DNA of 64,000 nt from Blepharisma stoltei ATCC 30299 (GCA_965603825.1 CBFDEM010000062.1:744001-808000); one strand, 5' to 3'. Counted from the first letter of the stretch, positions 18,470-62,585 are shown. Notes: generated from the letters alone by a model not told the origin. Translations and numbers: made by a program.

Positions 18470-18566
18470 TTCAGCTTTGAAAATTTAGCTCAATAAAGAT
18501 TATCTCAATATTTGTTGAATTAAATAATTAAACATTTTCGTAACAGCCAGACTAAAAAATATGGAC
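18470..18566. repeat. Conserved non-coding element, downstream of copy 1
   Basis: TTTTCGTAACAGCCAGACTAAAAAATATGGA core with a degenerate first half. Confidence 0.8.
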
Positions 18567-19178
18567 TTTCTGAAATTAAAATTTCAATGATATCGAATGA
18601 TATTGATTGATTTTTTAAAGGCTCTCTATCGACTGGAGTGTGTATCTTTAAAAATTCCTTACGTCAATAATGATTTTAATTTTTAAGATCTAAATCTGTA
18701 TTTTTAAGGTTAAATTAAATAAAACTTGAATTATTTTGTTCTAAATTAATGCTGTTGAAATTATTAATAAAATCAAAAGACAAAGCTGTATCGCATTCAT
18801 GTTATATAATCTACTATTAATGATTATGAGAAATATTACTTGAAGGTTGTATTTAATTTTTTGATAAGGCAATAAATTAATTTAATACAAAAGCATGTAT
18901 TTCCTTGCTTTATATAACAAGAATCTTTACAAGAGTACACAATAAATTCTTTATTTGCATATATTTCATTATTCAGAGAACCTGCTCAGATTTTCCTATA
19001 TTGCGCAATTCTTGTATTATATATACAATTTTCAAAATATAATGATTAATACTTTTTAGCATTGTTCTATTTTTGCAACGAAATAAAATAAGGATTACAT
19101 TACTTAGGCTCCATTTCTTAGATGTATATATTTATTAGTATTCAGACAATTCTGATAACGATTACTTAGAATTAAAGC

Positions 19179-19592
19179 TTAAATTGCCAAATCTTCAGTA
19201 TTAATGGGCTTACAAATCCTGGCTCTATGGTAACTCCGCAAATAGCAGAGCTGGCACATTCCCTTTGCGTAGAGTGAGCGATCCTGGTGTGGGCAAGTTC
19301 AAGCTTTTTTGTCTCTTCCACTTTTATGATAGCAAGAGTTGCACATATTCTTGGCGTAATGACGATTATTGTAATGAGGGCAAGCTGTGACCTTCATTTT
19401 TGGCGACTTTCTCGATCTTTTTTTTTTAGAATTTTTTTTATCCTCTTTCTGAGACTCAGCTTCTTTGACTTCACTCACCTCTTCCATGAATATGTTAGGA
19501 AGCTGTAGATTTGATGTTCCTTTTGAAGACTTGAAAATTAAGGAATACATGCCTGAAAACACTGTAGCTTCATAATCGGATTTTTTATTCAT
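19179..19592 (-). CDS. Twin Cys/His zinc-finger-like protein, copy 1
   Basis: FSGMYSLIF..LQLPNIF..CPH....HYAKNMCNSCYH..(W=TGA 19299)TCPHQDRSLYAKGMCQLCY; TAA at 19179. Confidence 0.9.
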
Positions 19593-20403
19593 CTATAATA
19601 TTATATTATGTTTCTTAAGGTTTTTTAGTAAGAGAACTAAAATTGATATAAATGCAGCTTATCTGATGTGATAATAAGTGCAATGCAGTTATTGGTAACT
19701 TTTTGCTGCTTATATAGAGTGGAATATTATTTATAAAAAAAATTTACAACAGAAATCCTTAATTTAGCATATAATAGCATTTAAAACTGAAAATGAATTG
19801 TACCGATGATTATGAAAAATGATTCCATGAATAGTACTAAATTTGTATTTTTTATTTTAAATCTAAGTTTGCTTATATAAAATTAATAAAGAATAATTAA
19901 ATGTGTTTATAAGTATTCTTGTGTCAAATCAGAAGGAGGCACGAATTTCACTAGCCTTAATTTTTTTTATTACTGATTTATGGCTTTTTCCAAAAACTCC
20001 CAAAAAAATTAGGTAATTTATGAACACATATAGTTTCACTTTTTCTAAGCTACTTCCCAATTACAACCTGCAAAAATTAATATTCGTAAATGCGGGGTAG
20101 ATAAATTTAAAGATCAAAGGATGTGGTTGTATTTTTTATGCTTTTTTATCTTGGATAATTTTGATTAATATAGGCTTTTTTTTCTTTTTATATTGAAAAA
20201 CGGCCTCCTTGCAATAAATATAAAGCATCATTTATTTTAGAATCTATGATTTACCCTGTTGATTACTAAAATGCTTTTTAAATTATTAAATTAGCTATTT
20301 GATATAAAAACATTAATAATTCTTCTTCTATTGATTCCAACTCTCTTTTTAGGGTAGGTGTGTTAGATAAGGTTTCAAGCAAAAATTTCCTTTCATTATT
20401 ACA

Positions 20404-20490
20404 AGTTTAGCCTTATAAGCTTAGGCTCAGTAAAGCAGCTATTTTCATATTTATTGTAATAAATTTTGTAACAGCCAGACTAAAAACATA
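20404..20490. repeat. Conserved element, upstream of copy 1
   Basis: AGCCTTATAAGCTTAGGCTCAGTAAAGCAGCT..TCATATTTATT..AAATTTTGTAACAGCCAGACTAAAAA. Confidence 0.9.
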
Positions 20491-21852
20491 CGTTAAACTT
20501 ATGCTAAATATAAGAATCTTTCATAGAGCAATCTATAAATGAAATTTAAAAGCATTTAAAAATCTATTAATAGATAAGGATTTTCTTTCTTAACTTCATA
20601 GAAATTCTTAAATAAAGTGCGTTGTGCTTTTTAAGCCCTTCAAAATTCGAGATCAAATGAACACTATATTTATCTTTTCATTTACTACATAATAAATTGC
20701 CTTTTCTCATAAATGAATATGTAAAAACTCGAAAAAACTTCAGTAAGGTTTTGCTTCTTATAGTGCCACTACAATAAATACTTCAATTTGATAGCTCCTG
20801 AATTAATGCAACAGTATATAAAAATTATCCATAAACAGGCAAATGCCACAATTTTCAAGCCATTTAATCATTCCAAAACAACATATTTTGCAGGTTTCGT
20901 TCCCTTTCATTCATAAATTATCAATTTTATAATATAGTCTGTAAGTGGTACACGAAACATAAATATTTTGAAGCCTCATTTTTTAGCCTTTCTGGGAAGG
21001 TAATATTTTAGCTTGTGGCGCCCTTTGAAGCCGATTATGGACTAGCAAAGAGAAGCTTTTGCAGTGAATTTAATGAGTAAGAAAAGTAATTTTATAATAA
21101 GGATTATAATGTCGATACCTCTATCTATATCATTAATGCATAAAAATAATGCAATCTGCGAAAATCTATTAAAAATCATAAATTCGGACATAAATTTATC
21201 ATGACAGAAAGAATTTTTGATAAATAAAATGACTGCTTTGGATATCTGACAATTACCATATAATAGCTAATTTAAAGATATTTATAAAATTCATAACTAA
21301 ACAATCTTTTTAATACTAGCTATATAAATCAGTGAGATGGTTTCATTAAGTTCTTATCACAAAGAATGGAGACTAATAAATAATTATAAAATTAAAATCC
21401 CATACAAGTTAATTATAAAGAATAACTCATAGGTTTCTAATTAATGCTAAACTCTATGACATCAAAATTTATTCATAACCTCCAGGCTACCTATAAAAAA
21501 TCACGGATTTAAAAATATATTCAACTTAAAAATTTGCAATTATTTTAATAGATATTACATAAAAATAATTGGAAAAATTGTTTCTACAAATTTCTGGCTT
21601 AAATTCCTAAATTTATTATAGTTCTAATATTCATTATGCTAACTTAAATGGACCTTATCTAATAAATATAAAGTTATAATAGATTATGCTTTACCTTATT
21701 GATTAAATTCAAATAATAATTATCATGCCAACTAGCTATTTAATTGTAAAAGTATTATTTATGTATCTCTCTGATATTTCTGCTATAAATTTTTATCAAA
21801 TACTTTACTTATCAATTTAATTTTTTGAATAAAATATTTCCTTCACAATCAT

Positions 21853-21952
21853 AAGCTAGGCTTTATAAGCCTAGGCTCAGTATAGCAGTAAAATCCATAT
21901 TAATTGTATTTTGGCAAATTTAAAATTCTGCAGCAGACGTTTGAAATATGGA
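21853..21952. repeat. Conserved element, downstream of copy 2
   Basis: GGCTTTATAAGCCTAGGCTCAGTATAGCAG..CCATATT..AAATATGGA. Confidence 0.8.
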
Positions 21953-22298
21953 ATAACAAAACTTAAATTCAAAAATATATTGAATGATAATTATTGATAA
22001 TTTTGGAATTGCCGCCTGCTCAAGCATATTTATTAGTTGATATTTACTTACTTATAAAACAGGCAAAATTACGCTGAGAAATATATCTGGAAAAACTTCA
22101 TTTACCATTTAGAATAAATTTTTATATGAGTTTTCTAAGATAAAATATAAAGATAAAGGCTTTTATACATCCTTTTTTCACAAACTATTATGTCTGCCAT
22201 GAAAAGTAAAACATTTCTATATTGCATAATGCTATTATCGTTTGAGACTAATCTTTTCGATAGCTTATTGAAAATTAATTCTTAAATATTCAAATCTT

Positions 22299-22685
22299 CT
22301 AGATCTTGCGAGGCCTAGACTTATGATAATTTTGTAAATAGCAGAATTGACACATTCCCTTTGCGTAGTGCTGGCGATCCTCATGTGGGCAAATCCATGC
22401 CTTCGTTTGCCTTACTGCTCTATGATAGCAACTGCTGCACATATTCTTAGCATAGTGAGGCTTATTTATATGAGGGCAAGCTGTAACCCTCATTTTGATA
22501 AGCTTTTTATAACGACTTCTGAAAGTCGTCGAACCACTTTCCTTTTTCTCGAATTCTTCAATCTCGGGGTTTTCGTCTGAGGATATATTGGGAGTTATCA
22601 GATTTGATGCTTCTTTAGGAGCCTGAAACAGCAGGGAAAACATTTCTGAAAACACTGCAACTTTATCCCAAAACATTTTATCCAT
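22299..22685 (-). CDS. Twin zinc-finger-like protein, copy 2
   Basis: Same motifs, intact ORF. Confidence 0.9.
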   Translation of the reverse strand: MDKMFWDKVAVFSEMFSLLFQAPKEASNLITPNISSDENPEIEEFEKKESGSTTFRSRYKKLIKMRVTACPHINKPHYAKNMCSSCYHRAVRQTKAWICPHEDRQHYAKGMCQFCYLQNYHKSRPRKI

Positions 22686-23289
22686 CTAAAAATATATTTG
22701 TTGAAATATCTGTGAAATAAAATAATAAACTTAAAACAATAAAAATATTAGCAAAGGAAGAATCAAAATCAAGGTTCCTGAAAAGATTGTATTGATTATT
22801 ATTTTAGTTCAATTTAAAAACAATTTATAAGTCTAAAAATTTGAGTTATATAGTTTAGAATTTTTCTATTTCATTTTAAGGTATTTATTAAACAAATCAA
22901 ACAACCAAAAGTTTTTAAAGATAAATTAATGCATAATTTGCCTTTTTATATATTGAAAGTACTTTAGAAATTTTTCAAATAAATAATTGTGATAAATAAT
23001 GTTAAAATTTAGGCGTTTTACATAATATATTGATTTACATATACAAAATACAGATATTTTATTGCTAGGAATGTTTCTTACAATTTCGATGTGCAATTTA
23101 ATAAATTTTATTAATCTTTACGACTTACATTGAATATAAATTTTGATGATATAAATATTCTTGAAGGGCGGAAATATTTGCACCCACAGAAATTTCATGA
23201 AATCGGACTTTTGGTTTATTTTCTACAGATTTATAATCACATATGCTAATAAGATCAAGAAGTTTATTTTATTTTTGCAAAATCATCAT

Positions 23290-23352
23290 CTTAAACTGGG
23301 TCAGTAAAGTGGTAAACTTCATAAATTTGTAACAGCAGAAGCAAAAATGGAA
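23290..23352. repeat. Conserved element (short spacer), between copies 2 and 3
   Basis: CTGGGTCAGTAAAGTGG..TTCATAAATTTGTAACAGCAGAAGCAAAAATGGA. Confidence 0.8.
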
Positions 23353-23532
23353 AATTGAATTTGAAATATCCCGAATGCTTCAAAGGTGATTTTTGAGGAT
23401 CTTTTGCTCTATCATCCTGAAGAAGCATTTAACTGCTTATTATATGTTTAAAAAAATTATAAGGAGATAAAGATGTCTGTGCTGCTTTATGTCAACATGC
23501 TTAGTTTTTTTAATAATCTAATTGTAAATGAC

Positions 23533-23940
23533 TTAAATCTTTAAATCATCTAATTTGATGACAACCTTGCAAGATTTTGACTTATGATAGCTTCGCAAAT
23601 AGCAGAACTGGCACATTCCCTTTGCATAGAGTTGGCGATCTTGGTGTGGGCAATCCGAAGCCTTCTTGTTTCGCCCGCTTCGGTGATAGCAATTATTGCA
23701 CATGTTCTTGGCATAGTGTTTTTTATTTGCGTGAGGGCACGCTGTAATTCTTTTTTTGGGTACTTTTTTGCGCTTATAAACTTTTTTTAAATTTCTTCTT
23801 TTAATGAATTCCTCAACATCTGTGGCATCGTCAGAGAAGATATTGGGAAGTCGCAGAGTTGGCACTTCTTCTGGATCTGCCAAGATTAGGGAAAATATTC
23901 CTGAAAACACTGTTGTGTTGTCTTTGTTAACTTCTTTCAT
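23533..23940 (-). CDS. Twin zinc-finger-like protein, copy 3
   Basis: Same motifs; linker W replaced by S. Confidence 0.9.
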   Translation of the reverse strand: MKEVNKDNTTVFSGIFSLILADPEEVPTLRLPNIFSDDATDVEEFIKRRNLKKVYKRKKVPKKRITACPHANKKHYAKNMCNNCYHRSGRNKKASDCPHQDRQLYAKGMCQFCYLRSYHKSKSCKVVIKLDDLKI

Positions 23941-24699
23941 ATTTATTATGCTACTTTATCTGGTAGTGAACCTTAAATGAGTCTCTTAAGCCTTAAATTA
24001 ATTAATCGTGTCGTATCGTAAATTATTTACGCACTATTTGCAAATTGCTGTCTTTATTTTTGAGAAACTTGATCTTAAATTTTTCAATAATCAGCTTAAA
24101 ATTTCTTTTTAGTTGATAATTTTTCATCATATATTCATTTTTATTGTTGAAAGCTAAAGTTGATTTAGGCTCAGGTAGTATCAAATAATGATAATGCCAA
24201 TTTGATAATAGTTTTTATTATGATAACATCCTAACTCATAGATGAAAAAATAGAAAATAATAGCAATTAGGACATGATCTAAATTGGCCAAGAATAAGAA
24301 AGCTCTAGAGGATCAATTCTATATTAGTAATTTAATAATTTATAATAACTAGCTAAATAGACTATAATTTAGTTGAATTCTCTACAATTTATGACGATGC
24401 TTTGCCCAAGAACAATAATCTGTGTGTTAGCATTTTAATATTAAAATATAGTCGAAGTATAAAAAACCTTAAGATTTCTAAGAATAATCTCTAATATAAC
24501 TAATCCGTACTAAAAACAGTTCAGCAATAAAAGAAATCAAAGATAAAGGTGAAAAATCTGTATTTCATTTCTCTAAGCAAGAATTAATAAAATGATAATT
24601 TGACTCAACAAGTTTATATTTTTTGTAAAAATTATAATATTATTGCCTGCAATTTCATCATCTTCAGTTTATTTATTTTAAAAGAAAAAATCCCTGTCC

Positions 24700-24800
24700 T
24701 CATCAACCCAGCACAATATATTAGTAAAATCGATGTCACATTTTGCCATTTTTCAAAATTAAATTTTGTAACAGCTAGACTAATTAAGATATTTGGATTA
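24700..24800. repeat. Conserved element, upstream of copy 3
   Basis: CATCAACCCAGC..TTAGTAAA..AAATTTTGTAACAGCTAGACTAA. Confidence 0.75.
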
Positions 24801-25409
24801 ATAAAAATTATAATTTGAAGCATTTATAAAGCTATTTTACAATCACATTACTGCTCCAATCCATTATCAATTTTAATTGTTATCCTTAAACATAAGCAAA
24901 AACCTCTCTCCTAGTCATGAAGTTTTTAATCATAATTTTACACAATTATAAGTTTAATTTATTTAATTTTTATAAAATAAAATATTTGAAAGAATATTTA
25001 AGAGAGAAAAAGAGGAGTGAGACTATTAGATTGTCTTGATATAAAACAATCGTCTTTATTTCTCAATCTAAGAGTATTTTATTTTTTTATTATACTCATA
25101 TATCAACTAGCAAAATATAAGGAATTCATGAATTATTAATATAATGAAGCGCTTTATATATTTTAAGTATTTTGGATTGATTCTTGTATATTTTAGTAAA
25201 TTATTTTCACATTTAACTTAATGCATTTAATAATTTTATAGGTAAATAAATATGACTTATGAGCATATTTATCAATAAATGCTACAGTATCTTGATTTAA
25301 AATAAAATTTTTAAATATTCAAATCTTAAAATTTATTGCTATAGCAAATATCTGTAATATTTTCATTTAAATATAATAAATTTTAATTTGAATTTTCCTC
25401 ATTATTATA

Positions 25410-25503
25410 TCAGCTTTGCAAACTTATACGATCAGTAAGATGGCTAAATGCATATTTTCTTATTTGATAAATAAAATTTGTAACAGCCAGATTAAAAATG
25501 GAA
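25410..25503. repeat. Conserved element, downstream of copy 4
   Basis: CAGCTTT..GATCAGTAAGATGGCT..CATATTT..AAATTTGTAACAGCCAGATTAAAAATGGA. Confidence 0.85.
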
Positions 25504-25815
25504 TATCCAAAAGCCCAATCTAAAAGAAGTTAATACTATTTTTCCTCTTTTACGAGTTATCGGCAACCGCGGTGTTTAGATGTTCCCATTACTTTCTTAA
25601 TAATGATAAAAAGATTTTTATAATGAAATAGCCATATAAATTGATATAATGTTGATGCAAAGCAAATTTTCATATAAGATAATCAGTCAAAGTTAATGAT
25701 AAATATAAAATTGCATGATATTATATTTTTATTATCTTTACTATAAAGCTTCTTGCGGTTTATTTATACATATTATTATCACAATTTTTATAAATAAAAG
25801 ATTTGGAATTAAAAT

Positions 25816-26223
25816 TTATATTTCCAATGCTTCTGATTTAATAACTATTTTGAGAGACTTAGACTTGTGATAGCTCTGCAAATAGCAAAATTGGCACATC
25901 CCTTTAGCGTATAATTGACGATCTTGGTGCGGGCAGGTCCAAGCCTTTTTTTGTCTCCCGCTTCTATGATAGCAATTATTGCACATATTCCTGGCGTAAT
26001 GCCGCTTGTTCGTATGTGGGCAAGCTGTGATCCTCTTTTTATATGCCTTTTTTCGCTTGTAAACTTTTTTTATAATTTTCTTTGGCTCAGATTCTTCAAG
26101 ATCAGGGACTTCATCAGAGAAGATATTAGGAAGCCGGAGACTGCACAGATCTTCTGAATAATGGAAGATTAGTGAATACATCCCTGAAAACACTGTGATT
26201 TTGTCTTTGCAGATTTCTTTCAT
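25816..26223 (-). CDS. Twin zinc-finger-like protein, copy 4
   Basis: Same motifs; closest to copy 5. Confidence 0.9.
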   Translation of the reverse strand: MKEICKDKITVFSGMYSLIFHYSEDLCSLRLPNIFSDEVPDLEESEPKKIIKKVYKRKKAYKKRITACPHTNKRHYARNMCNNCYHRSGRQKKAWTCPHQDRQLYAKGMCQFCYLQSYHKSKSLKIVIKSEALEI

Positions 26224-27030
26224 ATTTAATATATTAAATTTTCACGCAAAAATGTAACACCTAAAACTATGGCATTTATGCAACATAAGAAATTGCACAT
26301 TAAATAGTCTTGAAAAGGTCTAAACTGACCTGAATTTATGATTTATTTATTTTGCTCTTAACTCTACCTAGGCTACTATTTATCAAATATTTTCCAAAAC
26401 ATATAAACAAATAGCCATAAATATAAAAAGGTTTTAGAATTTCACGATAATAATATTAGGATAAATAATAATTAGGCAGCTTTTTATCGAAATTTATACA
26501 ATTAGCAGGGAGATCAAACATATGAATTTCCCATAAAGTTTAAGAATAACAAATTTTTTTAATTTCTATTAAGCTTTCAGTTAGGAAATTGACCTAAACA
26601 TAAACTGATAACTAAATTATTTACGAATTTATGCAAATAAGTAAAAATAATAATTGGCCTAAAAGGGATAAAAAGAGTTTTGACTTATTGTTTTTGCATC
26701 CTAATTTCGTAGAATTTGTAAGCAACTTATTTTATTATAATCTTCAAGCTGCTCGCCTATATTTGCTGGATAGAATTCTCATATAAGCCAAGCTTTATAC
26801 TCATAAAATGGCGAAATTTTTAAGGTGCCATCTGCCAACCAGCTTCATTCACTTTATCTTTTAAATGAAAATATAAGATCAAATTAAATCCTGGAATTAA
26901 CATATTAAATCCTTTTGATTACAATGAATAATAATTTGTTTTATCAAATTGCCATTTTTTGAAAAAATCACAAAGATTATTATTTATTTGCTTTTCTGTC
27001 ATATTTGCGTAATAAAAGAATTATAACTTT

Positions 27031-27060
27031 CATCAATCCAGCCTTATAATCTGGATTTAA
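27031..27060. repeat. Half element, upstream of copy 4
   Basis: CATCAATCCAGCCTTATAATCTGG matches the first half only. Confidence 0.5.
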
Positions 27061-27259
27061 TTTTAATTTGAAAGGAGTTACTTTAATATGAAGCAGGATA
27101 TTTTTATAACACTTTTAGGAAATAGCAAGATCAAACCCAACTTGATATTTTTTTTTAATAGCTTAAAAAATTTTGTTGAAGTGACTTTCTATAACAGTTT
27201 TTTTGTGAAAAAATGAATATAACTTATCAAAAGTATTCTGCTTACTTAAGTTCCTTAAT

Positions 27260-27900
27260 ATCAGCTGGAGCCGCAGCCATTTAAAGAATTGATACAATTG
27301 CATTGAAGATGGCTAAGTATGTTGGGACAGAAGTGGAGTGAAGTTAAACTTGCTAGATTCTTATTTAAACAAGAGATTGCAAAGTAATTGGATTAGGATT
27401 TTAGTAATATTTAAAATTTGCTGACTGGAGTTGATCTGCTTGAAATTACTTTGGCCTACCTTCAAGAAATAAGGTGAAGTTCCCTGAAAATGAATTAAGG
27501 TAGCCTTGCTAAAGCACATTGTTCTATTGGGATCATAGCCTTCACCATGCTTCTCCAGTAAATTTGCATTTTATAGTCTTAAAGTTAGTTTTGTAAATTT
27601 TTTAGTAATACCATTTTCTTTAGAAACTCTTTATCCATTACCTTCAAGGTTGTCTGCGACATTAGTGATCAAAGCTTCAATTCTACAGTTTTTGAAAATC
27701 AATGATAAGCCTAAAAAGCAAGAGCTAAATTATTAAGGAAGGGATAGAGTGGCTGATCTTAAGTGAAATAGTTTTTCTAAGATACTAAGGAAGCAGTTTT
27801 TAGTTTCTTTATTGAGGCAGCTTAGAGTTTCTATAAGGGCACTTGCGAACTAAAGGTAATTACTTTCTAAGAAGTCTTTAGCATTATCTAATGGTTGAGG
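27260..27900 (-). pseudogene. Decayed coding relic
   Basis: Elevated GC and protein-like pieces (IYWRSMVKAMIPIEQCALARLP*FIFREL) with stops. Confidence 0.35.
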
Positions 27901-27914
27901 TTTGATAGGCTACC

Positions 27915-28025
27915 AATACTGAGTATAAGAAATATGCAGATTGCTTTCATATTAATTTAATTATTCAGCTCAAATTTTTTTAATTCTTAAATACAATTTT
28001 GTAATATTCAGTCCAAAATATGGAT
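27915..28025. repeat. Degenerate element, downstream of copy 5
   Basis: GCAG..TTTCATATT..AATTTTGTAATATTCAGTCCAAAATATGGAT. Confidence 0.6.
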
Positions 28026-28315
28026 CATTAAAGCTAATAAGAAAATTTGTTATAGCTAAATAAATAGAATTAGCACGCTTGCAATTTTAAAACAAATTTT
28101 ATTAAGGTTATTACTTTGAGGTACAGGAGTTAATTATTTCCTTAATGGCATTAAAATTAATATGTTGTTATTTGACAAAAATTATGTTTTTATACGAATA
28201 AAGGCAGAATTGAATCATATTTTCTTATGTCTATTATATAAATTTATGCACCCCTAAAAAAGTTTTGTGTATATTATTAGCATTGAAGCATAAATTATAA
28301 AAATTATAAGTTAGC

Positions 28316-28723
28316 TTAAACTTTTAATTCTTCTTTCTTAATAACAACTTGGAGAGACCTAGACTTGTGATAGCACTGCAAATAGCAAAACTGGCACACT
28401 CCTTTTGCGTATAATTGACGATCTTGGTGTGGACAAGCCCAAGCCCTTTTGACTCTCCCGCTTTTGTGGTAGCAATTATTGCACATATTCCTTGCATAGT
28501 GACGTTTATTCTTATGTGGACAAGCTGTGATCTTCTTTTTATAAGCTGTTTTGCCCTTTTTGGCTTTTTTAATAATTTTCTTTGGCTCTGATTCTTCTAG
28601 ATCAGGGACTTCATCAAAGAAGATATTAGGAAGCCGAAGACTATATAGATCTTCTGAATAGTTGAAGATCAGTGAATACATCCCTGAAAACACTGTGATT
28701 TTGTCCTCGCAAAATTCTTTCAT
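28316..28723 (-). CDS. Twin zinc-finger-like protein, copy 5
   Basis: Same motifs, intact ORF. Confidence 0.9.
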   Translation of the reverse strand: MKEFCEDKITVFSGMYSLIFNYSEDLYSLRLPNIFFDEVPDLEESEPKKIIKKAKKGKTAYKKKITACPHKNKRHYARNMCNNCYHKSGRVKRAWACPHQDRQLYAKGVCQFCYLQCYHKSRSLQVVIKKEELKV

Positions 28724-29599
28724 ATTTTATATTATATTCAACCAAAATTTTTACACAAAAATGTAACACCCAAACATGTGGCATTTAAACTACTTGAAAA
28801 ATTACCTCATAAGAATAGAAGCTCAGGTGCTAATTGATCTTAATTAGGTATTTATATAGTTTACACTTATTTATACCAAAAGCTGCAATATTTATCAAAA
28901 TAATTTGCGAAGCATAAAAACTTAAGCAATCATAATATTTAAAGAAAACCTAGAGAAACACTAAATTATTTACTAATTGGTTGATTAAGCAACTTTTTAT
29001 TGAAAATTCGACGATTAATAGGAAGTGAATTATAAGAATTTCTATAAATTTTAGGAGAAGCAATCACCCATTCGATTTCTTTTAAGTTTATTATAAAAAA
29101 TTTGAGGGCTAAGATGAAAAGTGAACAATTCTATTATTCAAATTTATGAATATAAAGTATAAAAAAGTTTTGACTTAAATAATTTGCTTACCTTTTGCAA
29201 TTTTTGAATTTCTTTGTGTCAGTGTATTCTTTAGTATTTTTGTACCAGAATGAAGGTTTAGGAATTTTTTGAGGCAAGAGTTCAATATCCAAAGTAATCC
29301 AGAAGAAGCTAGGGTCAATTAACTTGCACAATTATTATTTTAAAATTAAGAAAAGTTTAGTCACTAAATATATTCTCCCTATTAAACTACAGGCTTTAAT
29401 TTTTCGTGTTTGATGAAAATAGAATTGAAATTCTATCAATACTTTGTAATCTAATAAATCAAAAAATCATTCTATGCTGAAATCGACTTCTTGCTATAAA
29501 AAAATGTAAGAACAGTCTAAAATGTTTTGAAATCAGTAAGATTATTTTTCATTTTATCTCTCAACATATTCCGTGTAATAGCTAAATAGTTCTAATTTT

Positions 29600-29682
29600 C
29601 ATCAACCCAGCTTGGAATCACTATGCCCATATTTTTTTATATTTTATTAGGAAATTTTTGTAACAGCCAGATAAAATTAGAT
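29600..29682. repeat. Conserved element, upstream of copy 5
   Basis: CATCAACCCAGCTT..CCATATTT..AAATTTTTGTAACAGCCAGATAAAA. Confidence 0.75.
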
Positions 29683-51580: not shown

Positions 51581-53004
51581 ATAACTAATTTAAGCTAGAT
51601 AATTTGCTTCTAATTCGCCCCTTGGCTTACTAACAAAATTATTGAATTTTCTTTAAAATTTACGCTTCAGCACTAAAAGTAAATATCAAAATAATTATTG
51701 GCTTCCTTTATAGGCCTTAAGGTTCTCTATTTATCACAAAATTTAAGAAGTTGAAATTCTTATCTTGAAGTTAATTTTAGAATAAAAATATATCTATTAG
51801 TCTCAAATTAAAGGAAAAACTTAGCTCATAGACATAATTATTATATTTTATTAGCAATTTTAATTTAGTTTATGTAATATTAAATATCTGTAGATATATA
51901 GTTTTCTCTGCAGCTTCTGAAAAGCTAATCTCTTATTTTAGAGTTTTATATAGCATCTAAGTTTCTGAATAATGCCATGAAAAATTAACTAATGAATTAG
52001 ATCTTATGAGATTTTACAGAAAAAGAAGTAAAATGGTCGAATTATTGCTAAGTCCAGTCTTGAAGCATAACCATAAACTATTTTTGGCTTATTTAAAAGG
52101 TAAAAATTATAAGCATTATTATGGATTATTAAGATATAAAAAAGGGTGAGTTTATAAGATTTTTGCATTATTTTAGTCGAACTGTAAAGTAATTGCTTTT
52201 ATATTTAAAAATTTCGTATTGTAATTGACATCCAAGATTTTTTCTAATTTTAATAGCCTTAATTCTATACTGAAAATGAATTTTTAGAATATAAATTAGA
52301 ATCTTTATCAATTCAATATAGTTTAGCACTACTTTTAATTCATTAAATTAAGCTTCATTTACTATTATATGATTGTGCCAATTATAAAAAGATAAGGAGT
52401 TTCATAGTATACATTTTTACCTTCCATAATTAATTTAAAAATATTTCACATCAAACAGCTGATAAATTTTCGAAATAGCAAAATAATTAAAATAATATCC
52501 CATAGTAAAATTATCAGTTCTGATAAATAATAATATTTCTATTATCTAGCAAAAAAAACCCTCTAAAACTAAAATTTCTTATGTTATTTTTTTAAGAGAG
52601 CTAAAAACTTGCAAAAATTATAGCATCAAAAACTTCAAAACACAAAGGCGTTGCTTATAATAATACCCTAGGCAATCAATAATAAGCCCTAAGCTTATTT
52701 TTGGCTTTTTAAGATGGAAATAAAAAAAATGTTTTACCTTATGCCCTTTTATTCTGTTAAACTGATTATTCAAATAGGCTATTTTATTATTTTGAATATT
52801 TTGGTATTAATTTTAGCTAAATTTCATGGAACCAAATAATCATATTCTGAATTTGAAAATGGAATTTATTGATAAAATATCAAGTCAATCAAAAATCCTG
52901 AAAGACTTAATATTTTTTTGTTACCTGTATGCAGCTAATTTTCTCCCTAATATTCGGGCAAATCATAAATTAATTTATGCAATAAATTTCCCTTATTTTC
53001 ACAA

Positions 53005-53100
53005 GCTAAGCTTTATAATCCTGGGATCAGTAAAGCAGCTACTTCATATTTATTACAATTAATTATCAAATATTTGTAACAGCTAGTATAAAAATGGATC
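53005..53100. repeat. Conserved element, downstream of copy 9
   Basis: Near-identical to 33978-34075. Confidence 0.9.
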
Positions 53101-53411
53101 ATCGAATCATAATTTCAAATGACACTGCTACTGTTTTATGATGCACTAAAAATTATCTATTATTTAAATACTGCTGTCTAGCTGTTTGCCTTGCCTTCTG
53201 CATTTAATAGCTATAAAAAGCTATATCATTGCGAAGATTTAAGATTTGAGTTTAATATATGAATCAACATTTAATGGGTTTACTGATCTAGAAGATTAAA
53301 GTTGAATTAAATAATTTTATTTACTTATAAAAAACTTTTTAAGCAGCTCTCTAAAATAATATTTATATATTAGTATTCCAGACTAATTTTTTATAAAACT
53401 AAACAAAAAAT

Positions 53412-53834
53412 TTAAGCTTGAATTTTTAACCTTTCGGATTTGATGACAACTTTACAAGATCTAGACTTATGGTAGCTCTGCAAATAGCAAAACTGGCACA
53501 TTCCTTTAGCATAGAGCAGACGATCTTGGTGTGGGCAACTCCAAGCTTTTTTGTGTCGCCCACTTTTATGGTAGCAATTGCTGCACATACTCTTGGCATA
53601 GTGGCGTCTATTCGCATGAGGGCAAGCAGTGATTCTCTTATGTGCGCCTCTTGCTGGGCGCCTTTTAGAAACCTCTTCAGGATTTTCCTTAGACTCACCT
53701 TCTTCTTCAACTTCGCTATCTTCGCAAGAAAATATATTAGGAAGTCTTAGGCTAGATCCTTCTTCTGAAAATTTGAATATCAAGGAAAACATCCCTGAAA
53801 AAACATTGAGTTTATCCTTATAATTCTCACTCAT
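53412..53834 (-). CDS. Twin zinc-finger-like protein, copy 9
   Basis: Same motifs; lies within the segmental duplication. Confidence 0.9.
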   Translation of the reverse strand: MSENYKDKLNVFSGMFSLIFKFSEEGSSLRLPNIFSCEDSEVEEEGESKENPEEVSKRRPARGAHKRITACPHANRRHYAKSMCSNCYHKSGRHKKAWSCPHQDRLLYAKGMCQFCYLQSYHKSRSCKVVIKSERLKIQA

Positions 53835-55444
53835 CTATATTATTATATATTATCCACCAATCCACCCTATAAATGGAACAACCAACATGAATTACAATTA
53901 AAACATTAAAGAAGCCCAAAAACTGAAAAGTCAAATAAATGCTTCTATTGATAAATATTGCTTATATTTTCTTTAATTTTAAGATCTTTGCTAATAAAGA
54001 AAATTTAGAAAATTTTTCAAAAATATAAGTCATATAAATAAATAGAAAAATAGAAGTAATTTTAAAAAAACGCTAATTTTTATCGAGTAAGGAAGGTTTT
54101 TAATAAAAGTTTAGAAAATTGCTAAATTTTAATTTTTTTGAAGTATTTCATCCAAACGCCATTATTTGAACAAAATGGAAAATGGAACTTTTTTATGATG
54201 TGGATATTTTGTCTTTTTAAGCTTATCTAGTTAGGGATAATTATGAATAATTAAATCTTGATAATAATTATAATAGCTTTCATTTATTGCTTAGGTTTAT
54301 AGTTATGTAAAATCGAATATAGAGATAGAAAATCTGGAATTTCAATATTATATAAAAATCATATATAATGATTCAAAATTTTATTGTTTTATGTTTAAGA
54401 TTCAAATATTTATTATAAGATCCATAAATTATTTATTCATTCGCAAAGATAACCAAATTTTTTGGAATTTAATGGTCTTCATTATGATACTCTGATAAAA
54501 CTTTTTAGATATTACATTAAAGTTGCAAGACTTTTACACTCTCAGCCAATTGCCTGGAAATTCCAATGCAGTTCACGAGGAATTGATATTGTTTAAAATA
54601 TTTCTGGCTATATAAAAACCTTTCAAAATAGGATTGGCGAATCCCAATATACTTTGATGTATAATAAAATCTCAAAGTTTAGATAGATTGCAATTAATTT
54701 AAAATTATTTGAGCATAAATCAGCAAATAGAAGCATTAGATTTCTCAGAATCATTAAAAAGTATTTGAATTTATATTTAAATTCCAAAAACGAAATTTAT
54801 AAATTGCGCAAAATTCATAATACCTTCTGCTTTAATGACAAGAATTAGGTATTAAGATGAAAATAAAAAAAATAATTTTGGCTTAATAATTCGTTCTTTA
54901 TTACGCTGTGCACTAAATTATTTCTTTATTATTTGAAAATTTAATTTTAAGCAAAAATTTAAAAGAGCTTTATGGCAATATCTGTGTATAATGATGGACA
55001 TATTATGTGAATAAATAAAAATTTAGAAATAACCTTAATATGTCGAATATAAATCCTTGCAAACACTTTTACCATTAATTTAATTGCCACTCAGAAACAA
55101 ATTTAAAAGAACAATAAAAATCGATTTTTTCTAAAAATTTATTTTAATTAAAAAAGCTAATTAAAGCTAAATAATTCAGGACATATTAAAATTTCATTAA
55201 ATGGGTTTTTCAGCATAGATCTTGATTTTTAAGGATGGAGTAAAAAAGGGTTTAAGTCAATTTTTTATATATTAACACAACTGAATTAAATGCAAGAATT
55301 CATATTCAATTATATAATTAAAATAATAAAGGATTTAAGAATATAGTCTCGCTATTTATTTAATCATCTAGAATAATTGCATTTTTACTCACTCTTAATT
55401 TTCTCGCTAATATATATATGGCAATCTTGTTCTTTTGTCATCAA

Positions 55445-55530
55445 AGTTCAGCTTAATAGGCCTTGATCAGTAATGTGGCTCACTCATATTTTATATTTGG
55501 TAAATAAAATTTTGTAACAGCTAGGCTTGG
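55445..55530. repeat. Conserved element, downstream of copy 10
   Basis: CAGCTTAATAGGCCTTGATCAGTAATGTGGCTCACTCATATTT..AAATTTTGTAACAGCTAGGCT. Confidence 0.8.
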
Positions 55531-56094
55531 AAATTGCTAGAATAATGAGAAATTCAATATTATGATTAAACTTAATATGTAAAGATTATCTTTTTATTTA
55601 GCAAGATATTGTGTTAGCTACATCCTACTCCATAATACCTTTAAATGCATTTCAGCATAATTTTCGATATTTTCCTGATTTACATTAAAATCAATACAAT
55701 TATATCTACTTAATAAAAGGTAACTCTTAATCGGTCGAACTATAAATTCTGTCATATTTTTCAGGAGAATAGTTGTATTAGAGCAATTTAAGCTCTAAGG
55801 CTTAAAGCCATAAAACAATTTCCAATAAAATAAAAATGTTCTCATTATTGATGACATCACTGTATAAACATTTTTATATAAATTTGTTAATTAAAACCGA
55901 GGATAAAAGGTAAGCAATGCCTTCCTTAGTTTAACCGCTAAAATAGTCCCTCAGACCCACTCTAACTGGATCTAAGCAATTCTTTATTTATAGCAATTAA
56001 CTGATTACTCTAATGCCTTCATCACATAACTCTAAGATTTTATATATTATTGGTTTTACTAGCCATTTTAGATAACTCAACCTAAAGTTAAACA

Positions 56095-56499
56095 TTAATT
56101 TTCTTCTTTAGGCACTTTTGAAGTTCTCATCTGATGATAATTTTTTAAGTAGCAAGCTTTGCACAATCCTTTGGCATAGAATTTGAGGTCTTTATGCGGG
56201 CACATCCAAGCTTCTTTTTGTCTCCCAAATTTATGGTAACAATTGCTACACATGTTTCTGGCGTAATGCCGTTTATTTGCGTGAGGGCAAGCAGTGTTCT
56301 TCCTTCTATGCTGCTTTTTCGTTTTGCTTTTGGGATTATTTTTAACTTTTTTCTCTTCCTTGATTTCTTTAGAATTACTATCATCGTGCAAAAATTGAAT
56401 TTTAGGTAATTTTCGGCTTGGTTCTCCTTCTATAAAATTTGAAATCAAGGAGAACATCCCTGAGAATACTGAAACCTTATCTCTGAAATTTTCACCCAT
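56095..56499 (-). CDS. Twin zinc-finger-like protein, copy 10
   Basis: Same motifs, more diverged. Confidence 0.9.
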   Translation of the reverse strand: MGENFRDKVSVFSGMFSLISNFIEGEPSRKLPKIQFLHDDSNSKEIKEEKKVKNNPKSKTKKQHRRKNTACPHANKRHYARNMCSNCYHKFGRQKEAWMCPHKDLKFYAKGLCKACYLKNYHQMRTSKVPKEEN

Positions 56500-57784
56500 C
56501 TATAATATTATGTCGTCCACGAATTTAAATTTGAAATGGAAGATTATTTTATTAGGTATTTAAAAAATTCAAAAGTTAGCATAATTTACGAAACAATTAG
56601 ACAACTCTGCAATTAGTATTAAATATATATATATATATATTGTTTTATTTTAAGCATGAACCTTACACAAAAATTTATTTGATTTGAAAAAACTTCTTAA
56701 AAAAAATAGCATGATAGAGGGTAGCTTAGGGACACTAGGGATGAAGCAGCACCATGAAGAATTGCCAAAATTGAGAGTTGGTGAAAATAAAACTAATATG
56801 AAAAATTTATTAAGAATTATTGCAAATCAAAAGTCATTTTGGAGAATTTTTGAATTTTTACTATGAATTTTTTGTCCTGAACTTTTCTATTTCACTTTTA
56901 TTTTATATTAATAAAAAACTCGCTTATTCTATCAGCAATTTTTATTTTGTAAAGATGCAAAAACAACATCATCAGATGGACAACTGAAGCAAGATTATTA
57001 GAAATTTGAAAGCTCTAGAATTATTGAATAGCACTAAATATTATTAAATTATACAAAATAATAATCTGTTTTAAAAATAAATAATGTCAAATTTGATTAT
57101 TTTTGGAACTAATTTTAGATATGTGCAAGATATTATAAATAGCTATTTTTGAAAAGTTGATTGAAACTCTTTAAGAATCAATAAAGGAATAGAAATCAGG
57201 CGGAATTAAAGATTTTTAATAATATAAATTATTTCTTAAAATTACTTACCATAATTTATATAAATATATATAAATTTATACAGTTTATTGATTAACTTAC
57301 TCAGTAGCTTTGATACATATTGCCTTTTCTAATTCTCATAAGTATAAATTATGAGATGCTACTTCACAAATAATTTTGTTATAATAAAAGTTAATCTTAT
57401 AAAGCTATTTATTTTTTAAATATTAAAATTTATGGATAAAAGTGATTAAAAACATAATTGTCTTATTAAAATATCTTAAAATACTTTTATTCTTTTGTCT
57501 AATTATTGCTTAAAAAAGCGTATTATAAATTTTCTAAATGTTTTGTTTAAAAAGGTAGCTTAAAATTAAAAAGAACTATCGATATAGGATATCATAAAAA
57601 ATCTCCATTTAGTATATTAAAGTAATTATTTCCTTATAAAAGTGATCATATGGTTTTTTAATATTAAATAGCATAGAAAAATAAAAAAATAAAAATTTTC
57701 TAATATTTTTATAGCAATCCTCACAAGATAACTATCCATTTTATCTTATCAATTAAATTAATATTTTGAATCTTAGCGAATTAG

Positions 57785-57824
57785 TTCCATTTATTTTAAA
57801 TTTGTGGACGATATAATGTTAAAG
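57785..57824 (+). promoter_or_regulatory. Conserved pre-ATG motif of the zinc-finger family (example copy)
   Basis: TTCCATTT-N-GTGGA-N-ATAAT-N-AG|ATG recurs, with variation, before copies 6, 7, 8, 9, 10, 11 and 12. Confidence 0.55.
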
Positions 57825-58208
57825 ATGAGCGAAAATTGCGACAATGGGTTTTCAATTTTTTCAGGGATGTTTTCCTTGATCTTTAAATCACGTGAAGGAG
57901 TACCAAGTCTAAGACTACCAGAAATACAATTCTTCGATGCCAAGGAAAGAAAATCAAAGGAAAAAGACAATGATTTTTTCAACTGCGACTCGAAAAGACC
58001 TAAAAAAATGAAGATTACTGCTTGCCCTCATGTAAATAAACGTCATTACGCCAGGAATATGTGTAGCACCTGCTACCATAGATCTGGAAGACAAAAGCAA
58101 GCTTGAGCATGTCAGCACAAAGATCGTCGGCTGTATGCCAAGGGAGTTTGTAAAACTTGTTACTTGAGGAATTACCATAAAGCAAAATTTTCCAAAGTGA
58201 AAAATTAA
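57825..58208 (+). CDS. Twin zinc-finger-like protein, copy 11
   Basis: ATG at 57825 (MSENCD), TGA 58104-06 = Trp, TAA 58206-08. Confidence 0.9.
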
Positions 58209-58521
58209 AAAAGCTTTAGTTTATAGTCGATAATTTAAAGAATTGTTTATAAAAAATAAGGATGCATATAATTTTAGGATGTATATAATTTTAGGGTCAT
58301 ATGATGCAAGGCACTGATGCTATTTTATTATGATTTATTATTGCTTATTTTTATTAGGGTATAATAAGTATAATTAAAACAGCTTCATATAAGGTTTTAA
58401 AATTTTCTTATGAAAATTAATATAGAGGAGGAAGAAGTAGGTGGCTCTACGCCAAGTCTCAAGAAATGATAGTCCTTAATAAAATTGATAAATAGCAGTC
58501 ATTAAATTTAAAATTTGACAA

Positions 58522-58615
58522 TTCCATATTTTTTAGTCTGTCTGTTACATAAAATTTAATTATCAAATAAACAAATATGAAATTAACTCCCTCACTGAAT
58601 AGGATTATTAAGGCT
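58522..58615. repeat. Conserved element, inverted, downstream of copy 11
   Basis: TCCATATTTTTTAGTCTGTCTGTTACATAAAATTT..AAATATGA..ACTGAATAGGATTATTAAGGCT, the reverse complement of the consensus. Confidence 0.85.
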
Positions 58616-60323
58616 ATCTTGAAATAATAAAAAATATTTTGTTGAAATAAATAACAATAAGCAATAAATTGAAATATTATCTCCTTTTAATAAAGCAGCG
58701 AATTCGCTTCTTGAGTTGATGATCATTTTTGCTAAAATTCCAATAATAAATATTGAGCAATAAAATAATTCAGACTGATGACATCGAAAATTGCATTCTG
58801 AGAAATTCAAAAATTAAATAAACTGCTTTTCGAAGTTTATTTAAATATGAAGACAGGTCTTTTATTTCATCTTCAAGGCTTAAGATATAATTTGAAAAAC
58901 CCTTGCACTACTTGCGTATAATTTTAGAATGCCATGGCTATCTTAGCTTTGGTTATCTTTTTAATTCATATTTCTCAGAATAATTTTTTATATTCTAATT
59001 ATTATTTATTAATTTCTTTCTTAAGCAAAAATAAAGCAAAGCAATTATTCGCTTTAATAAGACAAATCTTCTATAAGTTAAAGCTGCTTGCTTATTCTTA
59101 TAATTATGCATTCAGCACCATTTTTTGCATATATCTTACTCTTATCATTAAGGCTAATATAAATTTTTGCTTATTTAAGCTAAAGAAAATAGTTTTATTA
59201 CTGCAGTGGACTAGAGCACATATTACTTTTTATAATATTAAAACTCTTTGTCTTTTTATCTGAACATTTAAACACAAATCTAAAAAGCTTGCTTTTCAAA
59301 TCTAAAATTTTAAATAAAAATTCTGTCAATAGGGATTTTTTCAACACTGTTCTTCTTCAATATTTTCTTATGCTTATGAAGCTTGCTAATACGGCTTTAA
59401 TTAAAATCATAGGATAGCTTGAATTGAATACTGTTTTTGCAGAGATCATCACCTTTTCTGGGATTGCAATGATTTTAAAATAATATTAATCCCTTCATCA
59501 TTGCATGAGAAACCATCATGTTTTCTTGAAAATCTATAAAGAGGATAATATTTTCAACTTTCTATTATATATCAATAATCAGATATCAAAGAATTTATAA
59601 GAGTTTCCTGTTAATAAATTTGATAATGGTAAATGGAATTGCCAAATCTTAAAAGAAGGAGTAGTTAACATAAATGAAAGCTTTTCAGCAATTTATAAAT
59701 TTTTAGGATTCTGCTAAACAAAATATATCCTAAAAGATAAATTTATATTTGTTCATTTTGGTAGTCCATCTTCCTTATAATTCTTGAAAAATATGATTCA
59801 AAATTAGTCAAAACTTAGAGCTTCTTTTCTTATCCTTGAGTGTATGATCCCAAACAGGACTAAGTTTGTGATTTTTCATCTTATAACTGAACACCCAAAA
59901 TTAAAAATGCTATATTTAATATTAAAAAGAGTTGATTATTTTATTTCTTCTGTTGTATATGTCTTATTTTTGCTCACAAATCCTTTTATGTTAATATGCG
60001 GATCACATAATAAAGATAAACTCAGATTTCCTTACTAATAGTGCTAAAAATTGTGTAAATATTTATTTACAACTTCACCATAAATCTGAGATTTAAGATA
60101 GACCTAGAATATTTAAAATTAACTTTACAAAATTGATTAAAAATATCAGAAAGAGGTTGGCTTTATTTTTCAGCTCTTAAGAATAGATAACTTCATAAAA
60201 TATATTGTAACAAAATTTAATAGTGTTTCGCACTTAAGCAGCTTTTACTTTCAGATTATTATTATTATTAACAGTCCTTTTAAAGAATAAATTTTAATTT
60301 TAGATTTTCACTTACTTTTGAGT

Positions 60324-60390
60324 GTCCGATATTTTTTAGTTTGCTGTTATAAAATTTATATCTTTAATTTAAGACCAGCTTGAGCCAGAA
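60324..60390. repeat. Conserved element, inverted, upstream of copy 12
   Basis: GTCCGATATTTTTTAGTTTGCTGTTATAAAATTT..TGAGCCAG. Confidence 0.65.
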
Positions 60391-61785
60391 TCAAAATGCC
60401 TGAAATTGCATTTTTTAAAATATGCATAAATTTGTGAGCCAAACGATAGTTGCTCATTGGATATAACTATCAAATATAACAAAAATGAATTTACCTGAAT
60501 TTCTGATTAAAGCTTTCTAAGAAGCTAATTTTGTGATAATAAGAAATATTTTGCATAAACCACTTCTTATAGCAAAAAAGTAATAAATAAAAGATTATGC
60601 ATTTTTATAAGAAAAAGTTTATTAAAGATTATAGGCAATCCATATTGCAAACGCAAAAAGAAAAATTCAAATAATAATAAAGTAGTCGGCCAAAAGCCAT
60701 TCTAATAAATTTTTAAATGTGAACGTGAATTTTTTACTCCATTTTCAAGGCTAAACTTTATTTGATATATATTATACAGAGCTCTATGAACTGTTTAATA
60801 TTTTTGAATTTAGCCTCAACAATAATTTTAAAAAATTTAATTCTAATATTATTATTTGATTTTGATTTAAAAGAGATTTTTTAAAAAAGTTAGTGTGATA
60901 ATCATCAGCATGTACAAAGAATTTAAAAGTAAAAGCAAATTGCTTATTTTAAAAAATCATATGACTTGCCTGTGCTTTTCCATAATACTCAGTCTTATAA
61001 TTAAATCTTTTAAATTTGTGTATAGCTTGAAATATTATTTCAGCTGCAATAAACTGAACGAATTTAACCAATTAATATAAAAATTCAACTCACTTTATCT
61101 TCTTTTATAATTTATTTAAATATGATATTTTAATAGGGCTTTCTCATATAGTCTAAAATTAAAGTAGGCATTTTTTGATAGATATTTTATAATTACTTCC
61201 TTTATTCTGGTTTTCTGCATTTGCCCATGTTTATTGCATAGCCAGTCATATCTGAGTATTTCACAGCTATTATAAAATATTAAGCGTGAATTTATAAATA
61301 TGAATTTGCATTGCTATAAGCGAAAAAGAAAGTTCCCCTAAAATTTCATATTTTAACGTCTCTTTGTGAGTTTCTAATAACTCAGCAACTGGTCAAGCAT
61401 AATTTTTTTAAATTCTTCCATTTTAAATCTTCAATAAAAATCAAAAAATTTTAAAATTTCCAAGAATAATCCATAAGTTCATATAAATATGTTAACATTG
61501 TTAATTTTTTAGAAGCTAGCAGTCAAAATAATAATCCAAATTCTATATATTTAAGAACCAAATATAATAGCTATTTTTATTTCTTTATTGACCCAAGATT
61601 TTTGATCTTAAGATGTTTTTAACTGATTTTTTATGTTTTACGTAATAATTGAGACTTAAAATTAAATCGTAAGGCTTTTTTTTTTTTATTTTTTAAGTTC
61701 TATAAGCTTTTTAAATTTTTTAAATAAAACTATATGCTGAAAACTCCATTTATGTGTTAAATTCGTGGATAGGATAATATTATTG

Positions 61786-62178
61786 ATGAGTATAAACTTT
61801 GAGGACAACTCAACAATGTTTTCAGGAATGTTTTCCCTGGTATTTCCATCTAGAGAAGGATCTAGTCTGCGGCTTCCTAAAATAGAACCCTTTGAAGGAA
61901 TAAGTGAAGCTGAGCTAATCCAAAAACCCAAAATTCCATTGAAGAGCATTTCTAAAAAAAGGTCAAGGAAGAGAATCACAGCTTGCCCCCACGTGAATAA
62001 ACGATACTATGCAAGGAGCATGTGTAATAATTGCTATCATAAAATCGGGAGACAAAAAAAAGCTTGAAATTGCCAGCATACAGATCGCCAACTCTATGCA
62101 AAGGGATTATGTCAAAAATGCTATTTGCAGGATTATCATAGCCTTAAATCATGTAAGGCGGATGAGGAGAAGATTTAA
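61786..62178 (+). CDS. Twin zinc-finger-like protein, copy 12
   Basis: ATG at 61786, TGA 62065-67 = Trp, TAA 62176-78. Confidence 0.9.
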
Positions 62179-62486
62179 ATATTTAAGGCTAAAGCCATTT
62201 AAGATCAATCTAAAATTTTAACTGGATATAACTGTGCCTATTGGCTATAAAAGCTATTAAAATATATATTAAACGAATTATTTTTGCCTTTTTCCTTCAG
62301 TTTAAGCTTTACTTTCAACTTAATATTGCTTGCGTGATTCCTTAAAACCTCTTCAAAATTTATTACCTTTTTACATTTTTTTATAATTATATATTACTAA
62401 ATAAATATTACTTCAGCATGCTAAAGCAGGTGCATTATGATTTAGGGATAATAAAATTGGCTTCATTTGATGCGAATACTGAAAAG

Positions 62487-62585
62487 TCCATATTTTCAGC
62501 ATGGCTGGCTGTTACAAAATTAATTATTAAATATAACATTTAACTTACCTACTTTACTGGTTAAAGCTTATAAAGCCAAGCTTGC
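62487..62585. repeat. Conserved element, inverted, downstream of copy 12
   Basis: GTCCATATTTT..TGGCTGTTACAAAATT..CTACTTTACTGG..AAGCTTATAAAGC. Confidence 0.85.

Follow-up and report, generated by a model that had tools for sequence, protein, structure and literature searches.

A conserved, array-private non-coding element, most likely regulatory and promoter-like, beside the zinc-finger genes of a Blepharisma stoltei gene array

The 64,000-nucleotide stretch of Blepharisma stoltei ATCC 30299 analyzed here (contig 62, positions 744001-808000, hereafter the window) belongs to the somatic genome, which is free of internally eliminated sequences (IESs), the germline DNA removed from it, and it carries an array of exactly 12 paralogous zinc-finger genes (g1 to g12, 128-140 amino acids each, found by tblastn) accompanied by a bipartite, non-coding element of approximately 105 bp in 16-17 copies, 11 of them full and about five or six partial. 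The element is conserved beyond what chance and base composition account for, occurs in this array only, keeps a fixed orientation relative to its gene, lies outside the zinc-finger mRNA and shows no consensus RNA structure. A regulatory, promoter-like role is the most probable one, and the element does not represent a new class. Judging from the sequence, our tentative reading, to which we would give slightly less than an even chance, is that the element is a compact promoter together with the start of a tiny convergent transcription unit that was co-duplicated with each gene; that it initiates transcription is what we infer.

Conservation, copies and distribution of the element

The first-pass annotation of this DNA had described the element by literal consensus strings of 32 and 22 nt, and neither string has a match in the window at three or fewer mismatches; only the cores TTTGTAACAGC and TCAGTAAAGCAG recur there. 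A profile search was therefore required, and an nhmmer profile made from nine copies recovered the full copies with E values from 6e-24 to 5e-10, which together with the decayed copies brings the count close to the roughly 17 first proposed. In the best copy, that of g7, the boxes run in the order AGCTTTATAA, TCAGTAAAGCAG, TTCATATTT, an AT-rich spacer, TTTGTAACAGC.AG and AAAAATATGGA.

Mean pairwise identity of the element among ten old copies is 0.64, compared with 0.53-0.56 in five 105-bp flanking windows, 0.65 in the zinc-finger coding sequences and 0.53 +/- 0.03 in 400 random pairs of spacer 105-mers, in agreement with the earlier impression that the element stays recognizable where its flanks barely align. 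The column profile of the aligned units displays the same conserved island, with approximately 250 bp of unalignable DNA between element and gene, and conservation reaches about 25 bp further upstream and about 35 bp further downstream of the element. Across 11 copies, 14 columns are invariant and another 20 nearly so, grouped in boxes, and the spacing between boxes varies from copy to copy, with spacer indels of 12-26 nt. The pattern fits that which purifying selection on specific DNA positions or motifs would leave. Pairwise identities are star-like (0.53-0.72) and show no neighbor effect, the exception being the copies of g7 and g9, which belong to a segmental duplicate; this pair aside, no gene-conversion patches were found between copies. 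Divergence of the element is not correlated with divergence of the gene (rho -0.05, Mantel p 0.58).

All 12 genes have a copy or a remnant of the element 183-613 bp beyond the stop codon, as claimed before, and ten of these copies are full. From g1 to g12, the distances between the end of the element and the stop are 613, 347, 183, 312, ~286, 467, 346, ~250, 312, 573, 321 and 324 bp, with the value for g6 becoming 370 bp instead of 467 if its open-reading frame (ORF) is taken to end at 31690. The element lies on the strand opposite to the gene in every pair, including those of the plus-strand genes at 57.8 and 61.8 kb, so that the locked orientation described at first holds throughout. Orientation and spacing are passed on by duplication of the unit, however, and are therefore not independent evidence of function.

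Full copies on the plus strand pair with g1 (18464-18569, E 3.6e-18), g2 (21850-21955, E 1.7e-11), g4 (25406-25507, E 8e-19), g6 (31225-31320, E 4e-11), g7 (33972-34078, E 6e-24), g9 (52998-53103, E 5e-23, 94% identical to the g7 copy) and g10 (55440-55540, E 1.6e-20). Also on the plus strand, the copy paired with g3 has its spacer deleted (23273-23353, E 4.9e-10), that of g5 has decayed to boxes C-E (~27950-28030) and that of g8 is a remnant made up of box C and an ATGGAT start (~36262-36372). On the minus strand, full copies accompany g11 (58520-58624, E 2.4e-19) and g12 (62484-62588, E 5e-19). One more full copy is an orphan on the plus strand, 806 bp upstream of the g1 start (20398-20490, E 8e-20), and a second orphan, found by nhmmer on the minus strand (60325-60536), is split by an insertion of approximately 90 bp into boxes A-C (60464-60536) and box D (60325-60372). 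Neither orphan adjoins a zinc-finger gene or the relic of a zinc-finger pseudogene, so that at least two good copies stand alone. Partial copies on the plus strand lie 813 bp upstream of the g3 start (24753-24783, box D only, with an exact TTTTGTAACAGC, E 0.0024) and 898 bp upstream of the g5 start (29621-29672, boxes C-D, E 2.8e-6). A further partial copy, at 61548-61602, is doubtful. Because the orphan at 20398 and the two partial copies at 24753 and 29621 sit 806-898 bp upstream of g1, g3 and g5, respectively, these three genes are bracketed by direct repeats.

A profile search of the 41-Mb genome with a sequence-only covariance model produced strong matches, of 60-78 bits, in this array only; every match with E < 0.01 lies within it, and the best match elsewhere reached E 0.058. 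This search scored 150 of 64,788 first-look candidates, and its counts are lower bounds. BLAST of the element against the genome returned the copies in the window only. Box D at one mismatch or fewer occurs ten times in the genome, seven of them in the array. The genome holds 19 further zinc-finger paralogs on 13 other contigs, and at the 18 of these 19 loci that were searched with filters off, no element was present at the expected place (best score 11 bits, at a wrong position). The counterpart gene in another organism, which stands at a different locus with a similar downstream neighbor, is likewise without the element. When metagenomes were scanned for the box D-E pattern, 49 matches were returned, which we take to be due to chance because all score 20 bits or less, compared with 60-78 for real copies. 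The element is private to this one array, a block co-duplicated with its genes, and the cassette system tied to the gene family that the first-pass annotation put forward as a candidate is not supported.

The element as a candidate convergent promoter

The 3' box of the element is TAAAAAATATGGA, ending in the conserved AAAAATATGGA. ATGGA is kept in 11 copies, both decayed ones included, and the second codon is always GAN with the third base free. Long-ORF genes of B. stoltei start in similar A/T-rich contexts, such as TATAAAATATGGAA and ATAATATAGATG, with a TATA-like block only 10-25 nt before the ATG, and the motif block of the element, at approximately 100 bp, has the size of the conserved block before the zinc-finger genes. 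In these respects the element resembles the compact promoters and start regions of ciliates, in which a short AT-rich upstream stretch lies right against the ATG; it differs from them in that only ORFs of 2-46 codons, DNA of intergenic composition and no substantial gene follow it, and in that its motifs are unrelated to the zinc-finger promoter and are not reused elsewhere in the genome.

The ORFs that begin at the ATG of the element have a median length of 26 codons, whereas the median of 927 random ATGs in the spacers is 11 codons (p = 0.019, one-sided Mann-Whitney test), and 7 of 11 are at least 25 codons long where 22% would be expected. They comprise 41 codons in the copies of g1 (ATG at 18561) and g7 (ATG at 34070), 34 in that of g3, 25 in that of g6, 26 in that of g11, 18 in that of g12 and 46, from 36341, in the g8 remnant. 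Four old copies, those of g1, g2, g3 and g7, share a hydrophobic-hydrophobic-(I/F)-(D/E) motif at codons 14-17, which stands at exactly the same distance from the ATG in all four.

The RNA evidence places the element outside the zinc-finger transcript. Comparison of an RNA contig ending in T16 with the T6 found in the genome at 34397-34402, 19-25 nt beyond the g7 stop, locates poly(A) addition approximately 20-25 nt past the g7 stop, which is direct evidence for very short 3' untranslated regions in B. stoltei. The contigs of the RNA assemblies are limited to the coding regions of g9, g11 and, by sequence, g7, with ends at 53387-53406 and 58225. Since the zinc-finger mRNA ends approximately 20-25 nt past the stop and the element lies 183-613 bp away, the element is a separate unit and not part of the 3' untranslated region.

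In the reading that we tentatively favor, the upstream boxes AGCTTTATAA, TCAGTAAAGCAG, TTCATATTT and TTTGTAACAGCCAGAC would be bound by factors, and the 3' box would provide an initiation region and a start codon, set in the A-rich surroundings that B. stoltei genes typically have where they begin. The transcription unit, a very short one, would be directed at the 3' end of the neighboring zinc-finger gene, and its product could be a hydrophobic micro-protein of approximately 25-46 residues that has decayed in about half of the copies, or else a short non-coding RNA that runs toward the zinc-finger gene and perhaps, as antisense, into it. The element would have been copied and inverted with each gene because it was part of the ancestral duplicated unit. 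Its retention in the somatic genome, with no mapped IES junction touching a full copy, supports this reading. Among the four functions first suggested for the element, that of an antisense promoter comes closest to it. The arrangement resembles convergent or natural antisense units in that the element, fixed in its orientation, faces the end of the gene across a distance of 183-613 bp on its 3' side; it differs from them in that no antisense RNA is present among the RNA contigs, which stop at the zinc-finger poly(A) site. A stronger version, in which each unit has a conserved convergent promoter and the neighboring paralog would be regulated by its short transcript, be it an antisense RNA or a micro-protein mRNA, through such means as the 22-nt small-RNA pathway or transcriptional interference, seems unlikely to us.

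Several observations weigh against a functional transcription unit of this kind. The ORFs stop early in the copies of g2 (at codon 3), g4 (at codon 12) and g5 (ATGGAT at 28020), the g9 ORF is frameshifted, with two 1-nt deletions when compared with that of g7, its recent duplicate, the ATG is absent from the g10 copy and from the orphan at 20398, and indels of 1, 2 and 7 nt occur downstream of the ATG. Conservation by codon position is nearly flat (0.42, 0.53, 0.40). The 180-610 bp downstream of the element have intergenic composition (GC 0.24, no skew), and tblastx detected no coding conservation, only stop-ridden matches. A start-context weight matrix was too weak to separate the ATGs of the element from random ATGs, the public annotation has no gene model at the element ORFs, and the 41-residue ORF has no exact match in public gene calls. 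Three small assemblies, apparently of RNA, hold zinc-finger transcripts, yet none of their contigs extends over the elements of g9, g10 and g11 or into the downstream DNA. As negative evidence this is weak, since RNAs that are weak or rare, short or non-polyadenylated would be missing from contigs. The upstream boxes remain well conserved in the copies of g2, g4, g9 and g10 and in the orphan at 20398, while in the decayed g5 copy boxes C-E alone are left. As the boxes are kept where the ORF or the ATG is broken, selection acts mainly on the DNA boxes and not on the peptide.

Further models were rejected. The element is not a diverged copy of the zinc-finger gene promoter, with which it shares TCCAT..TAGT.TGG, since a profile of 11 gene-upstream regions matches no element. 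A canonical TATA box at -32 with an initiator TCATATT does not agree with the real TATA-like block of B. stoltei, which is only 10-25 nt before the ATG, and the spacing between box A and the start codon differs by up to approximately 30 nt between copies. A hidden second protein gene in the spacers is contradicted by stop-ridden tblastx matches and intergenic composition.

Alternative explanations

The main and serious rival to the promoter is a non-transcribed cis-regulatory DNA site, such as a downstream enhancer, silencer or boundary, that would control the adjacent zinc-finger gene or separate the units, with one or more factors binding two similar half-sites, GTAAAGCAG and GTAACAGCCAG. 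With no RNA family and no structure on either strand, the constraint falls on primary sequence, and such constraint together with variable spacing between boxes is as expected for protein-binding DNA, which counts for the promoter as well. The conservation of the boxes despite a lost ATG or ORF (g10, 20398, g2 and g4) points the same way, as do the RNA assemblies, in which zinc-finger mRNAs are present and no transcript contig lies over the element. A site of this kind leaves unexplained, however, why ATGGA is kept in an A-rich context even in decayed copies and why the ORFs exceed their chance length; it also has to accommodate well-preserved orphan copies without an adjoining gene and 19 dispersed paralogs that do without the element. 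We take this explanation seriously and consider it possible, if rather doubtful.

It is improbable that the element is a functionless relic, consisting of the promoter and 5' end of a former neighbor gene carried along by tandem duplications and conserved through slower decay or homogenization. Such a history would account for ORFs broken in about half of the copies, for the restriction to this array and for copies that are decayed or split (g5, g8 and 60325-60536). It does not account for an element that stays at the level of coding sequence while flanks of the same age have fallen to random-sequence identity, or for 34 columns that are unchanged or almost so across 11 copies; and the pairwise identities, uniformly 0.53-0.72, show no sign of gene conversion, no neighbor effect and no tie to gene divergence.

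The first-pass annotation had further suggested a small non-coding RNA gene, either like a small nuclear RNA (snRNA) of the Sm type or like a box C/D small nucleolar RNA (snoRNA), and this we regard as highly improbable. Box C/D snoRNAs are marked by a C box (RUGAUGA) near the 5' end, a D box (CUGA) near the 3' end and a terminal stem, and Sm-class snRNAs by an Sm site (RAU3-6GR) flanked by conserved stem-loops. The suggestion draws on AAUUUGUAA, which is Sm-like on one strand, and on a CUGA conserved on the other, and small RNAs are indeed easily missed in RNA assemblies. Rfam, however, gave no match at gathering thresholds over the whole window and none at E ≤ 5 over seven full and two partial copies; a single unrelated match at E ≤ 5 over 18300-34300 lies away from any element, and a tRNA scan found none. 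RNAalifold predicted zero consensus pairs on both strands, for the core and the extended version of the element alike. For a box C/D snoRNA, CUGA is conserved, but the C-box-like TGATGA is limited to the g7 copy, a conserved AUAUGA is just approximately 15 nt from CUGA, and no pairs were predicted for the terminal stem on the relevant strand. For an Sm-class snRNA or a spliced-leader RNA, AAUUUGUAA is present, but there are no consensus pairs and no match to an snRNA model. The likeness to the two classes does not go beyond short matches, one strand having CUGA and the opposite one AAUUUGU, with no conserved C box, terminal or flanking stems, covariation or Rfam match, and the spacer indels of 12-26 nt would fall inside the putative RNA. 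A gene of RNA polymerase III with a T-run terminator was rejected as well, given T4 inside the putative RNA in several copies.

Least probable of all is a recombination or mobility site, whether as the terminus of a mobile gene cassette or as a hotspot for duplication and inversion of units: copies do lie near unit boundaries, g1, g3 and g5 are bracketed by direct repeats formed with orphan or partial copies 806-898 bp upstream, and two units are inverted, but there are no copies elsewhere in the 41-Mb genome, no inverted terminal copies, no transposase and no position at IES junctions, unit lengths are irregular, the copies are old and without recent movement (53-72% identical except for one segmental duplicate), and the g7/g9 duplicate spans ~32750-35970, far past the element on both sides. 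A dispersed repeat or miniature inverted-repeat transposable element was likewise discarded, as the copies are confined to the array and no paired inverted copies were seen; with no RNA family either, the element belongs to no family that could be assigned, as was said of it from the start.

The element does not mark an IES boundary. The germline-inclusive public assembly GCA_914767885.1 is identical in sequence to the window apart from inserted blocks, 19 of which (contig CAJZBQ010000062.1) are IESs inserted across 14 kb of the window, at 28049-42316. Of the 19 internal IES junctions mapped in this interval, none interrupts either of its two full copies or the partial one at 29621-29672, to which the nearest junctions are 83-95 bp away; the decayed g8 remnant does have junctions within or next to it, at 36327-36338 and 36429-36431.

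The zinc-finger array and its significance

Ten of the genes are on the minus strand: g1 (19179-19592, 137 amino acids), g2 (22299-22685, 128), g3 (23533-23940, 135), g4 (25816-26223, 135), g5 (28316-28723, 135), g6 (31763-32173, 136), g7 (34421-34843, 140), g8 (36621-37031, 136), g9 (53412-53834, 140; a recent duplicate of g7, covered by contigs of the RNA assemblies) and g10 (56095-56499, 134). The other two, g11 (57816-58208, 130 amino acids, with an RNA-assembly contig at 57846-58225) and g12 (61786-62178, 130), are on the plus strand. All were located by tblastn, and g1, g6, g11 and g12 also as ORFs. Intact-looking paralogs contain in-frame TGA codons, of which g6 has a single one, consistent with the UGA=Trp code of B. 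stoltei. The array genes are separated by spacers of 1-3 kb (within 17800-40400 and 50100-64000) with 24-26% GC and without an ORF family or coding signal.

A recent segmental duplication of approximately 3.2 kb, 90-95% identical throughout, relates 32750-35970 to 51800-54950 and includes g7/g9, the element and an annotated 79-residue ORF (35526-35765). Approximately 16 kb of DNA with large Cys-rich genes and higher GC lies between its two copies.

Every array gene has a conserved upstream block of its own, GTTCCATTTAT..TTGTGGAT.ATAATAT..AGATG, within approximately 50 nt of the start codon (34844-34900 in g7), which provides further candidate promoter motifs that have no relation to the element. 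Several IESs lie in or close to the genes: one of approximately 294 bp interrupts the coding sequence of g7 (junction 34745-34748) and is treated as an intron in the annotation of the germline-inclusive assembly, others precede the g7 and g8 start codons by 7-9 bp (34850-34852 and 37038-37039), and another is 44-53 bp beyond the g7 stop (34371-34380).

The array proteins share an N-terminal VFSGMFSL and two C-P-H-x5-Y-A-K-x-M-C-x2-C-Y knuckles, and belong to a family of more than 330 members that includes sequences from Stentor, eukaryote transcriptomes (MMETSP, EukProt) and environmental assemblies. The family has no Pfam model, and searches of Pfam, PDB sequences, a protein atlas and Foldseek gave no assignment for the array protein. 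A supported clade (95/84) unites the array genes with a paralog that is present in single copy, on contig 16, and with one gene of another organism; branches are much longer for the array. The contig-16 paralog (locus 354518-357928) is 90% identical to an MMETSP transcript and 60% identical to a gene in a contig of Logan SRR24908292, and a convergent EF-hand-like gene lies downstream of both the paralog and its Logan-contig counterpart. Array copies are 50-75% identical to each other compared with 90% for the single-copy relative, which suggests that the array evolves much faster, and by its sequences it is a fast-evolving local expansion.

An AlphaFold model of the protein is confident over the fingers only (predicted local distance difference test scores of 85-95) and has no Foldseek match. 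Weak structural matches were obtained with VIA-align to the A20 domains of Rabex-5 and ZNF216 (Z 2.5 and 2.0), and Pfam zf-A20 matched two of 73 family members at E 0.017 and the query itself not at all. A20 fingers, which bind ubiquitin, have a zinc site of the form C-x2-4-C-x11-C-x2-C. The array knuckles resemble this in their C-x-H-x10-C-x2-C-Y followed by a helix, including NMCxxCY, and differ in the first ligand pair, which is C-x-H and not C-x2-4-C, and in scores far below thresholds. This faint, model-based likeness gives no support for DNA binding by the array fingers, which the first-pass annotation had considered, and no argument against it.

To our knowledge, the promoters and other cis-regulatory DNA of ciliates have been described very little, and those of heterotrichs hardly at all. 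If each unit does carry a convergent promoter whose short transcript regulates the adjacent paralog, the elements would be among the first cis-regulatory modules to be defined in heterotrichs and would give copy-by-copy or mutually exclusive control of the array. If there is no convergent transcript, the element would be a local conserved non-coding block to which no role is assigned. No new genome-wide system is revealed in either case. The dozen or so old copies of this regulatory block amount to a naturally replicated map of constrained positions, which are visible almost base by base because the flanks have diverged to randomness, and AGCTTTATAA, TCAGTAAAGCAG, TTCATATTT, TTTGTAACAGCCAGAC and AAAAATATGGA are candidate motifs for experiments in Blepharisma. 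Should the element drive a convergent transcript, the array would offer a compact model of antisense or micro-ORF control among rapidly diverging paralogs.

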